In this document: piece after piece, positions 130 through 15,639 of the stretch
Layout of the letters: each line of letters opens with the position of its first letter
Numbering within the stretch: position 1 is the stretch's first letter
DNA from: Oopsacas minuta
Lineage: Eukaryota; Animalia; Porifera
Assembly (NCBI GenBank): GCA_024704765.1
Contig: JAKMXF010000354.1
Location: 915,690 to 979,689, forward strand
Reading direction: 5' to 3'
Length of the DNA stretch: 64,000 nucleotides
Notes under the pieces: model-generated
Told to the model about the DNA's origin: nothing
Databases searched by the model: none
The model's input: the letters and a program-made list of their open reading frames with translations, nothing else
Position numbers and translations under genes: made by a program

Positions 130-3100
130 GTACAGATACAAAACGGAGCTCCGAACTCCGCAGTAGTGACTCTAAACAGAAACACGGCAGAGGAAGGAGG
201 AAAGGAATGCAGCGTAAGATGTCCCTCGATCCTCACTGTAAAGTAAAGCTCTCTAAACTAGAGAAAGCACTTTGTTACTTAGGTCAGTTATGCCATGTCA
301 GCATAATAGCATGTATGCAGTCATATATCTAATTATTTCCTAAAACTCAATAATCCAGTAAACACAAATATTTACTGTTAATGTCTGTCTATTGGGTGTA
401 TAAGGATATTATCTTTTTCTATTGCAATGGAGTTTGCTTGCAAATCTCCACAATCGGATCGATCACCTACTTTTATTGTTATGTCTTAATTACTTTGACC
501 AGCAATCAAATTATTGTTTATTAGCTTGTGAACTAATTGTACCCTCTTCTCTGCGCTAACCTAATTAGCGTGCTAACATTAATTTTTTATTGTTCTATTC
601 AGGTTATACACCGAGTGAAGAACAAAGAGCTCAGTTACATGAGAATTTAAATATTGATGAAGATGGATACGTGACTTATCTAGATTTTGTGAACGAGGCT
701 AAGAGGCTCTTCGCTATTCAAATTGATGAGAGACAGCTCAGTTCAGGTATTTTATCAAATTAGAAAATTATAGTAAACTCTAATAAGGAATAGATTAGCT
801 AAATAAATATATTAATATTACTCTCATAGAAAAGTATTTTTGCCCGTATATTTAATCATCTTGATCAATGGCCTGTTTCTTCTCAATCATCTCTTCTAAC
901 TTTCTCTGTAAAACTCGAGCAAATGTTGCTGTATATAGCGGACTTACCGAGTCGAGGAGCGAATATATAGTTTCATAAAATCTGTTTGTATTTTCTCCTT
1001 TCTCCATGAAATCGAATTCATTTGACACAATTCTGAAACCCTTGACAGATAGCTCCACGCAATATTTGACCTTTTCCTGAGTTTCTATGTTAAAATATAC
1101 CAGGTCACTGGTAGAGGCGAGCTTTGTAGAAACTTCAACTGACTTGACAGCAAACTCAATTTCTCTCTTTATTTCTGGAGCTTGTAAATTAAGGTTTATG
1201 TCTGTATCTGTTTCGCTCCCATACTCCCAATTGGTAGCTCTTGCCATATCTCTTTAAAATATAAATTGCTACTAAGTAGTAATACTGGGATATTTATTTT
1301 AAATAATTATGTCTGACATTACAATCAATTTCTGTTTATATCGAAGCTCAAGGGACAGTGAAAATTACTTCGCTATAACCCATGAAAATTATCTTACTTT
1401 GGCGGTTTGGGTCCATATTTGTACAATTACAGACTTCAATATAACTGAAGTTGAGTGTACATGATACAATGTATAATATTTAAATTTTCTTAGGATTATT
1501 CTTACTGGGCTCTACGCCAAGAGATGAGACAGACCAAATACAGAAAGAATTAGAGTTAGACCCAGATGCGTTTCGCAGTACAGCTGATGAAGATAGAAGT
1601 GTATTAGAACTGCTAGACGAGGTATAATATGTATAACACTTAAGAATAGACTATTTGTAATAATTCAGCCACAATTAAGCAAACAAATCATATAGTTATA
1701 GCTGGTAGAAGTTACTTGACCTCCTTTTCCTTCTCCTCGATTTGTTCCATCAGTCCTTGGACGTTCTGCTCCAGCTGTTCCACACGATCACTCATCTCGT
1801 CCAGTTTAGAAGTTATCTGAGTTGATATCTCCTCAAACTTGCCTTGCATGTCTTGGAGTAAGCGTCCTATTACCAAGGATAGATCTTGTGCCCGTGCGGA
1901 TTCTGCACCCTGTTGTCCAGGATTGTTCTCCTCTTGCTTAGAAGGGTTCATATCTCTGTGATTTGGATATAATATTAATTGCTAAATTTGAATGAAAATG
2001 CTTTCAAATTGGTTACAATTTCCTACAATACAATTATGGATAATTAGATTAAGATAAGAACTCTTGTTTCAGTCAATTAACACATGGTTAAGTGTTTCCT
2101 GTACATTTGTACATTTGAATATTGAGAAAAAACTCTAAGTTTAATCTATTTTAATGCCTCCTAAGATGGCAGTGATAACCAGGTGCTGGAGCATATCTAT
2201 TAGCTACTACTGTTACTATTCCCCCATCATTATTATATTACGTTTCACTGAGTTGTAAGAATTCTGTATTATTTCAATCTCAGTGTTGGAAAAAAGATGG
2301 ATCAGATATTGTCATGGCATGGGACATGATTGTAATTTGAATGTAATCGATACAAGAATAAGAAATTTTATCAAATTGTCTATCAGTGCAGTGTGAAAGG
2401 AGTATCCAGTGGGATATCAGGACACTATCATATTGACATACATTCTGATTAATATACAGGAAACTCCCGCTATAACGAAGTCGGATATAACGATACAAGA
2501 AAACATCCGAAAATATTGTCATCCTCATCTTTATAGATTACCTAAAAGTATACTTTATTACAATATTTTGTAAAGAATACAATTGAATGTTCTATTCTAA
2601 ATCAATCTACATAATGCTCTCATTATTCTTAAGTAGCATAGGTTTTAGCATGTGCTCTATCAGTTGACGACCAAATATATAGAATAATATCACCAGACCA
2701 ATTCATTATCTATATTATTGATTAAGAGAGGAGGTGGGGGAATGGTTTGTTATTTGTTATTTGTTATTTCTAGAGTGCTTAACTTATTTATTGACTGATA
2801 CATACTAACTTATAATTGTTTACAGTATTAACTAACTTATCAGGATCAATCATTCTAAGAATCATTAATATATGAATTTACTTCCTATTTCTGGGGTTTA
2901 TGTTCACTGTTTGAGTAACCTTGCATATAATCAGTTCTATTTAACTAGCATCCTAACGAAAGCCTCGAGGATATACGATAATTATCCAACGGCTATCTTT
3001 CAAGTAGTGCATATATTATCACCAGTTGCATAATAAGCAGGTTGAGATTATGCTGGGGATAATTGAGAAAGCGTGAAAAGTTTTATTATTATAAAATATG

Positions 3101-15100: not shown

Positions 15101-15639
15101 ACTATCTGTTGATAATTTTCATAGAAATAATCAGCACTTCATTACGTAGATACGAGGTAGCCTGTGAGAAACTTCTCCAATTCTGTCAACTTGCTCACGA
15201 GAATCTTTCAGAAGCTCAAGGATCAGAAGTGTTCGTAAACTATCCTCGAGGGATAGGAGAAACTGCCCGGAGAGGAAATGCTGTGTTAGGAAACCCTAGA
15301 CCGCCTCCAGCACTTGCTAATCACACCAAATTCACGAATATAACTTTAGCACAAGAGGCACAGGAAACTGTAGCCGCGGTCCGAAAGATTATCTCTCAAG
15401 CCAGCGTACTGCCGAAGGGATGGGACGAAGCTTTCACAGAAGACGGCCTCAAGTAATTATATTCATAAATTTATTTACCAGTTTCACTTTCAAATATTAT
15501 AAATTTATCTTTTAGATATTACATCAACTATGAAACACAAACTACTTCATGGCTACATCCTATTACCAAAACCGGACACACCAAATTTAGCAGACAGGGA
15601 ATAGTCACTGCTCCATTCACCCAGCCCCCCAAACTGTAA
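130..15639 (+). CDS. STXBP4: Syntaxin-binding protein 4 (Synip), 5'-partial; exons 130-282, 603-746, 1494-1621, 6631-6854, 15150-15452, 15516-15639; PDZ region presumably upstream of window
   Basis: GT-AG exons join in frame: [21 protein letters not shown]|[11 protein letters not shown]...[19 protein letters not shown] (EF-hand-like), coiled coil, [14 protein letters not shown]|[13 protein letters not shown] domain [15 protein letters not shown]|[15 protein letters not shown]. Collinear with human STXBP4 as recalled ([55 protein letters not shown]). Confidence 0.85.
852..1247 (-). CDS. GSKIP: GSK3-beta interaction protein (DUF727), intronless, nested in STXBP4 intron 747-1493
   Basis: [34 protein letters not shown]...[15 protein letters not shown] matches the GSKIP pattern. 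Confidence 0.9.
   Translation of the reverse strand: MARATNWEYGSETDTDINLNLQAPEIKREIEFAVKSVEVSTKLASTSDLVYFNIETQEKVKYCVELSVKGFRIVSNEFDFMEKGENTNRFYETIYSLLDSVSPLYTATFARVLQRKLEEMIEKKQAIDQDD
1322..1457. mobile_element. MITE family A (pogo/Tigger-like, Tc1/mariner superfamily)
   Basis: TA on both flanks; degenerate TIR CA(G)TCAACT(C)C(A)GTTATATCGAAG; interior homologous to 39911-40057 and to the reverse complement of 51444-51578. Confidence 0.8.
1712..1951 (-). CDS. HSBP1: Heat shock factor binding protein 1, nested in STXBP4 intron 1622-6630
   Basis: 79 aa; [47 protein letters not shown] is the HSBP1 coiled coil. Confidence 0.9.
   Translation of the reverse strand: MNPSKQEENNPGQQGAESARAQDLSLVIGRLLQDMQGKFEEISTQITSKLDEMSDRVEQLEQNVQGLMEQIEEKEKEVK
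2457..2493. mobile_element. Solo pogo-like TIR remnant
   Basis: TA-CAGGAAACTCCCGCTATAACGAAGTCGGATATAACGA resembles family A termini; no partner TIR found. Confidence 0.45.
3221..5392 (-). CDS. Class C-like orphan GPCR of the GPR158/GPR179 type, intronless, nested in STXBP4 intron
   Basis: Signal peptide, WRGPFLKC Cache-like segment, Cys-rich DFNQC...YYCVC...[17 protein letters not shown], seven hydrophobic helices with class C motifs ([21 protein letters not shown]), C-terminal coiled coil. Confidence 0.8.
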   Translation of the reverse strand: MGLFSYSFLFIYLILVTAGTSEICSDSDFPGCLHRINSTQLCDESSSDREVNGNFSKLLLEMDLNTINEVTHVVVDHVNSMIFQLYVDMLIDNTCQSNGTFNNPEFFVLNRKYMISPLENSRLISSGLLYMLQSLNYLIAWKEYDLLTATENTLPPAGNSRSKINTIETPQRLAQEPFQTIIQFPSDFIEIHHENSIETIPRVTTNDIKWRGPFLKCNNGEFLRLVAELPVYALTNCSTESATRFTQVSKTLFEVPLSFIDFNQCQQSETIKLQNCTTNSLCQKREYSSVYRRDSYYCVCIHSYSSLNVTHYSDIQICNTCHLSCFNCTDANPCYTEVLRWALLTWNTMIMLICFCLIIITIIFSYIIKHESFVSSAPRFLLFILIGSFLMYTTLIVEFFPPSSVTCILSPWFFYPGFSLAFGSLIIKSWRIIKLYKVSKNWKHKTKQPSSIDWHLFLRLLPFIFITVISLSAWTVYDKGSRLPEPQDQRANFKYCEQTDWNYLIIVANLLLIVFGIILSIKARTLPSTYRETRDILFSIYNITIVNAMCTVVAHTLYFYQQDVNFVVLFVNLHLGISFMIFIMFRKKVTDVFFDKIVHKKRKHTARVNDNMLLMSPQERIRFIAENRKLMELVGVKEKRIKELQKECLELKNERNIGIIMEDMNESSDPEISPAIESTERQGYEMSTYVYEKRDSATESEINLELRTKHEEYIVSSPISTDL
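6924..6997 (+). tRNA. tRNA-Val (anticodon CAC), inside STXBP4 intron 6855-15149
   Basis: Acceptor stem GTTTTCG/CGGAAAC+A, anticodon stem TGCGC/GCGCA with loop CTCACAC, T arm CCCGG-TTCGAAC-CCGGG; near-identical to the canonical animal tRNA-Val(CAC). Confidence 0.97.
7000..7004 (+). terminator. Pol III terminator (T5) after tRNA-Val
   Basis: TTTTT starts 3 nt after the discriminator base. Confidence 0.7.
7126..8940 (-). CDS. DDX41: DEAD-box helicase DDX41/Abstrakt, intronless, nested in STXBP4 intron
   Basis: Q motif, [30 protein letters not shown]-terminal [15 protein letters not shown] knuckle. Start placed at ATG 8940 (MKRK), not the upstream GTG. Confidence 0.95.
9138..10391 (-). CDS. DAW1: Dynein assembly factor with WD repeats 1 (ODA16/WDR69), intronless, nested in STXBP4 intron
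   Basis: [20 protein letters not shown]-terminus plus eight WD40 repeats; ATG at 10391. Confidence 0.95.
11098..11179. mobile_element. MITE family B, degenerate
   Basis: GTTAATACGAACTCCGGATAAG and CCGTCCGTTGGTGTTCG shared with 42224-42350 and 53919-54024. Confidence 0.6.

Follow-up and report, generated by a model that had tools for sequence, protein, structure and literature searches.

A probable STXBP4 gene of the glass sponge Oopsacas minuta holds antisense protein genes, a tRNA gene and a small same-strand gene in three long introns

Intron 27b of the human gene NF1 holds OMG, EVI2A and EVI2B on the opposite strand, and many Drosophila introns likewise hold nested genes. Among glass sponges, Aphrocallistes vastus has 2432 nested genes (12.4%), many of them conserved, and shares 848 synteny blocks with Oopsacas minuta, whose own annotation lists only 83 nested genes, a figure put down to the annotation method (PMC10282587). 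Here we describe a nest in O. minuta, located in a window of 64,000 nucleotides (the whole stretch analysed; contig JAKMXF010000354.1, positions 915,690 to 979,689, forward strand), in which five antisense protein genes, a tRNA gene and a small same-strand gene lie within three long introns of one host. From sequence comparison, the host is very probably the only STXBP4 (Synip) orthologue of this sponge, represented here by its 3' two-thirds and transcribed as one pre-mRNA. No description of this nest was found in the literature searched.

The identity of the host was sought exon by exon, each exon being searched singly. Pfam recognized only half of a WW domain, in the last exon (exon F, below). 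A profile of the preceding exon, E (profile A1, made from four species), was searched against 1.8 billion representatives and matched full-length proteins of 535-1024 amino acids (aa), always just before the C-terminus. Those named syntaxin-binding protein 4 (or -like) by NCBI/UniProt belong to echinoderms, a hemichordate, molluscs and annelids (Acanthaster, Amphiura, Saccoglossus, Mytilus, Potamilus and Lamellibrachia), and an Ephydatia protein was also among the matches; all of the STXBP4(-like) matches carry PDZ and C-terminal WW domains, and a later word search added STXBP4 of fish, snake and amphioxus. When 19 STXBP4 homologues, those of fish, snake, amphioxus and starfish among them, were placed by tblastn onto the window and the 10 kb upstream of it (L002), the alignments followed one another as PDZ1, the two halves of PDZ2, then exons A, B, D and E/F; the PDZ open reading frames (ORFs) upstream of the window, at L002:5184-5522 and L002:8812-9032, align in order to PDZ1 and PDZ2 of STXBP4. 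Searched against PDB, PDZ1 gave generic PDZ matches only and no STXBP4 entry. At the junction between exons D and E, across the longest intron, the end of exon D abuts the start of exon E in homologue coordinates (736|738 in Antedon, 647|647 in amphioxus, 582|583 in snake), and in starfish STXBP4 the residues straddling this junction lie inside a single exon and match without a gap, the nearest starfish intron lying about nine codons further on. The gap-free match across the 8.3-kb splice that the initial annotation had given for the human protein is thus borne out on real orthologues (Antedon, amphioxus, snake and starfish). The WW domain is split by an intron of 63 bp, and the entire domain aligns to the WW domains of the homologues. 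Neither the exon E profile, which has one match in the 61-Mb genome, nor starfish protein segments for exons B, D and E, each of which matches this locus only (the remaining matches being generic PDZ/WW), revealed a second STXBP4 locus in the genome, which the initial annotation had named as grounds for rejecting its model. Three Logan-derived matches (P0045, P0063 and P0077) were considered as sponge STXBP4 and rejected, their identity of about 35% placing them in other phyla.

Window positions 130-15639 (+ strand) were read directly for exon ends, splice sites and phases. The six host exons are A (130-282), B (603-746), C (1494-1621), D (6631-6854), E (15150-15452) and F (15516-15639), all on the + strand, and the introns between them measure 320, 747, 5009, 8295 and 63 bp, all of them GT...AG. 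The three long introns (747-1493, 747 bp; 1622-6630, 5009 bp; 6855-15149, 8295 bp) have phases 1, 0 and 2, which are compatible, and the coordinates and lengths first proposed for them proved exact. Exons A (with its AG acceptor and GT donor read) and B align to STXBP4 homologues; C is a poorly conserved linker, D is a coiled-coil part, E holds the STXBP4-specific region and the first half of the WW domain, and F holds the second half (Pfam WW positions 17-31, E=0.0048) followed by the stop TAA. Exons B, D and E are each single copy in the genome. The phases fit at every host junction: one codon is split 1+2 between exons B and C, another 2+1 between D and E. If B were spliced straight to D, the frame would change and run into a stop, which makes exon C necessary in the host; exons E and F contain no Met codon and therefore cannot form a separate gene; and reading through the exon D donor leads to an immediate stop (AGG TAA).

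Related loci were found through ORF calls on genomic contigs that match exon E, and were then walked upstream. They form four species-level sets (L003/L010; L004; L005/L011, with L006-L008; and L009), which, judging from similarity and shared gene order, are probably other glass sponges. In L010 and L011 the order is INTS4 (+), an EF-hand gene (-), exon A, exon B, GSKIP (-), exon C, HSBP1 (-), a class C receptor gene (-), exon D, tRNA-Val (+), DDX41 (-), DAW1 (-), exon E and exon F; in L004 and L009 this order is preserved from DDX41 or the receptor onwards, and L003, L004, L005 and L009 keep the D-E part. The acceptors, donors and phases of exons A-F are all kept in the related loci: the splice sites and phase of exon A, and the acceptor and donor of exon C, in L010 and L011; the donor AG|GTAA of exon D, the acceptor and donor of exon E, and exon F in four species. 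The one departure is the donor of exon B at L010:2705-2706, which is GC rather than GT and likely belongs to a GC-AG intron. Amino acid identity to the window is 89-91% for exon B and 43-51% for exon C (both in L010/L011), and 81-91% for exon E, while intron DNA outside the genes and exons gives no alignment between related species. Inspection of the orthologous introns in other sponges, which the initial annotation had proposed as a check, thus found nest order, strands, splice sites and phases kept. A further related contig of 5.4 kb, L012 (ENA ERZ26869290 ctg158063), contains four copies of the exon D ORF, successive copies facing opposite ways, and has the look of an artefact of assembly.

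The in-order match to STXBP4, the gap-free D|E junction, the lack of a Met codon in E and F, the frame requirement for exon C, the single copy, and the conserved splice sites and phases together support a single host. Several observations weigh against this conclusion. Exon C has no match to STXBP4 proteins outside glass sponges, and a spliced STXBP4 protein of a glass sponge was found neither by the exon E profile search of the 1.8 billion representatives, nor by a search with an alignment in which the exons stood as individual rows beside a full-length homologue, nor by the exon E word search, which returned only unspliced ORF calls from genomic contigs. Given the stop at the unspliced exon D donor, a shorter isoform ending inside the 8.3-kb intron might also be made, and poly(A)-like signals that follow a small same-strand gene in this intron (ATTAAA at 11714, AATAAA at 11900) could end some host transcripts early. 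The same facts leave some room for the most durable alternative, namely that the exons belong to two or more separate units, for example a PDZ/coiled-coil gene ending after exon D, with E/F a remnant or part of another transcript: the host junctions are known from sequence comparison, a stop follows exon D directly if its donor is unused, and on its way the polymerase would meet a tRNA gene, two genes running towards it, and a same-strand gene followed by poly(A)-like signals. We nevertheless consider separate units quite unlikely, as the Met-less exons E and F are 77-91% conserved as protein and retain their acceptor, donor and phase in four species whose flanking intron is unalignable, and all of the distant STXBP4 proteins hold both parts in one chain with no gap.

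The single STXBP4 host carries its five antisense guests as single ORFs on the - strand, taken from the ORF list, with family calls by Pfam, PDB and Atlas. The 747-bp intron contains GSKIP (852-1247, -, 131 aa; Pfam GSKIP_dom, E=1.1e-30), kept at the same place and strand in L010 and L011. The 5009-bp intron contains HSBP1 (1712-1951, -, 79 aa; Pfam HSBP1, E=1.7e-17), kept in L010 and L011, and a GPR158/179-like class C receptor (3221-5392, -, 723 aa; Pfam 7tm_3, E=3.9e-36, and GPR158_179_EC), kept in L010, L011, L005 and L009. The best PDB matches of the receptor are GPR158 and GPR179 and both of its Pfam domains are above cut-offs; it is called only GPR158-like here because its N-terminal 200 residues have no assigned domain. 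The 8295-bp intron contains DDX41 (7126-8940, -, 604 aa from the first ATG; ORF 7126-8982), with DEAD and Helicase_C domains, and DAW1 (WDR69-like; 9138-10391, -, 417 aa from the first ATG; ORF 9138-10415), with seven WD40 repeats. The helicase matches human DDX41 in PDB over residues 9-604 (E=7e-247, 824 bits, against 291 bits for the next helicase, DDX23). The Atlas clusters closest to the WD40 protein, whether ranked by features or by structure, all bear the name dynein assembly factor with WD repeats 1 (template-modelling (TM) score 0.99); Atlas names are automatic, and its identity as DAW1 is accordingly of lead grade. As the initial annotation had it, all five are intronless, antisense and at the positions and in the families proposed, and each lies whole between a host donor and acceptor, here as well as in L010 and L011.

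The genome contains a single match to GSKIP and a single match to HSBP1, and the next best matches for DDX41 and DAW1 are paralogues 41% and 32% identical; since the nested copies of these four genes are the only ones of the genome, they must work. Amino acid identity to the window is 68-81% for GSKIP, 66-72% for HSBP1, 44-61% for the receptor and, across four species, 81-87% for DDX41 and 81-88% for DAW1. That the nested ORFs might be retrocopies or decaying pseudogenes, with working copies elsewhere, is a reading that the absence of introns from all five would favour, but we hold it to be very unlikely: besides being the only copies, the ORFs are intact, full-length when compared with human DDX41, and 66-88% conserved in species whose introns are unalignable. 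Intronless guests are in any case unremarkable, since 9872 of the 16,340 genes of O. minuta (about 60%) are single-exon (PMC10282587, Table 1). The exact DDX41 and receptor products are present in NCBI/UniRef, and an exact look-up in the public protein collection did not find the GSKIP, HSBP1, DAW1 (417 aa) or 65-aa (see below) products; the missing records may reflect the published under-annotation, which they fit, or else another choice of start codon. An exact look-up of GSKIP among encoding contigs gave no match, and records of the O. minuta genome seem to be left out there. The idea that unrelated pieces were wrongly joined in assembly, so that the genes merely seem intronic, can practically be dismissed even though related contig L012 does look like a palindromic artefact, as four other species, assembled independently, show the same order and strands, in part on contigs of 0.9-1.9 Mb.

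Besides these five working antisense genes, the 8295-bp intron of the STXBP4 host contains two genes on the host's own strand. The initial annotation, which described antisense genes and a tRNA, was correct about the former, did not place the latter on the host strand, and missed a sixth, same-strand ORF. The tRNA gene, tRNA-Val(CAC), lies at 6923-6999 (+; found by ARAGORN; Rfam tRNA, 61.2 bits) and is followed by a run of T. It is found on the host strand 57-149 nt past the exon D donor in L003 (822-897), L005 (2558-2634) and L009 (4261-4344), and 84 nt of this region are 100% identical between the window and L009. The ORF, of 65 codons from ATG to TAA, lies at 11362-11559 (+), is single copy in the genome and encodes two hydrophobic stretches. 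Together with its immediate flanks, at 11345-11577, it forms the best-conserved DNA of the 8.3-kb intron (81-85% identity, versus 72-79% for the coding genes). This stretch was suspected of being a structured RNA, as it is more conserved than the exons, and the suggestion was rejected: Rfam gave no match, and the variable columns of the ORF (36/13/2 at codon positions 3/1/2) have a coding pattern, which argues for a translated gene. The product is 85-89% identical in amino acids in four species, with conservation bounded by the ATG and the stop codon, and 56 nt upstream of the ORF lies a TATA-like box, TATAAATA (11299-11306, +), invariant in the four-species alignment and with variable flanks. 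No Pfam, PDB or Atlas relative was found, and its database relatives are 65-aa counterparts in related assemblies only. The best reading of the product, from its sequence, is a small two-pass membrane protein limited, as far as the searches reach, to the related sponge group. No other gene of the locus is as strongly conserved as the 65-codon ORF.

Beyond the guests, the long introns contain four further stretches (1952-3220, 5393-6630, 10392-11298 and 11560-15149), in which blastn and six-frame tblastn against three orthologous loci revealed no further conserved genes, and which are free of tandem repeats and occur nowhere else in the genome. The longest of them, 11560-15149 (3.6 kb, a long blank for so compact a genome), is unique, ORF-free and unconserved, and has a matching gap of 3.5-4.1 kb in three other species; since the size of the gap is kept without sequence or genes, intron length is not accounted for by gene content alone. 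The proposal that the long introns act as gene containers is consequently a fair description, in agreement with the published counts for glass sponges, with two qualifications: about 3.6 kb of the longest intron is blank, and nesting is also same-strand (the tRNA, the 65-codon ORF and, upstream, INTS4). The accompanying claim that normal introns here are 45-70 bp was compared only with the host's own last intron (63 bp), which agrees; the published means for O. minuta are 194-341 bp (PMC10282587, PMC10280926), the larger value, 341 bp, being from PMC10280926.

The crowding extends upstream of the window. An INTS4-like gene (L002:5934-8672, +) lies on the same strand as the host inside the intron splitting PDZ2, and an antisense EF-hand gene (L002:9251-9710 and about 9880-9920, -) is interleaved with the host, a host exon (L002:9765-9866, +) lying between its exons. 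In all, the host carries a minimum of eight nested or interleaved genes. Its three long introns contain at least six protein genes and the tRNA, and two more genes lie upstream. Downstream, from 16500-18218 (-) on, the neighbours are a TPR protein, LMF1 and a BUB1-like kinase, and their order is kept in L003, L004, L005 and L009, which fits the general microsynteny of glass sponges.

How such a locus would be expressed can be outlined from the arrangement of its parts. RNA polymerase II would transcribe the host from PDZ1, some 4.8 kb before the window begins, as far as 15639 at least, and the spliceosome would remove the three gene-bearing introns and join the coiled-coil segment to the WW-domain end. 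Each antisense guest would be transcribed independently, from its own promoter inside the intron; tRNA-Val would be made by RNA polymerase III, and transcription of the 65-codon gene would be driven by its TATA box. Being antisense, the guests would not end the host message with their poly(A) signals; past the ATTAAA/AATAAA of the small same-strand gene, in turn, the host would have to be read through, or a shorter isoform would result. A bolder proposal, which we regard as unlikely, is that the nest is a conserved regulatory unit, in which host transcription across convergent essential genes (DDX41, DAW1, GSKIP, HSBP1 and, upstream, INTS4) and the sense tRNA after the donor would tune either partner, and which would also hide a lineage-restricted, highly conserved 65-residue membrane microprotein of a new family.

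The principle of introns as gene containers is already published, and this locus is a crowded new instance of it; as nesting in glass sponges was known, our knowledge of genome architecture is unchanged. What the analysis provides is a well-supported model for a gene that automatic annotation likely breaks, together with a candidate new microprotein (the 65-codon ORF). It also suggests that the figure of 83 published for the nested genes of O. minuta is a gross underestimate, one host alone holding at least eight that are nested or interleaved.

The host resembles STXBP4 of other animals, likewise a single-copy gene, in having PDZ domain(s), a central coiled-coil, the STXBP4-specific region and a C-terminal WW domain in the same order. 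Unlike the sponge host, the STXBP4 loci of starfish (19.4 kb) and Nematostella (25.4 kb) have no nested genes: none are called inside them, and tblastn gave no match to the six guest proteins. The nest would therefore be a feature of the sponge, probably the hexactinellid, lineage and not an ancient animal layout. As in NF1 intron 27b and the Drosophila nests, several small and mostly antisense genes share one long intron of a larger host; by contrast, the sponge host is short and its genome compact, and in two of the three introns most of the length is taken up by nested genes. The closest likeness is to the nested genes of the glass sponges A. vastus and O. minuta (Francis et al. 2023, PMC10282587), which are likewise complete, mostly single-exon genes in the introns of a compact genome, often in conserved nests, and under-called in O. 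minuta; measured against these published nests, the STXBP4 host is unusually crowded.

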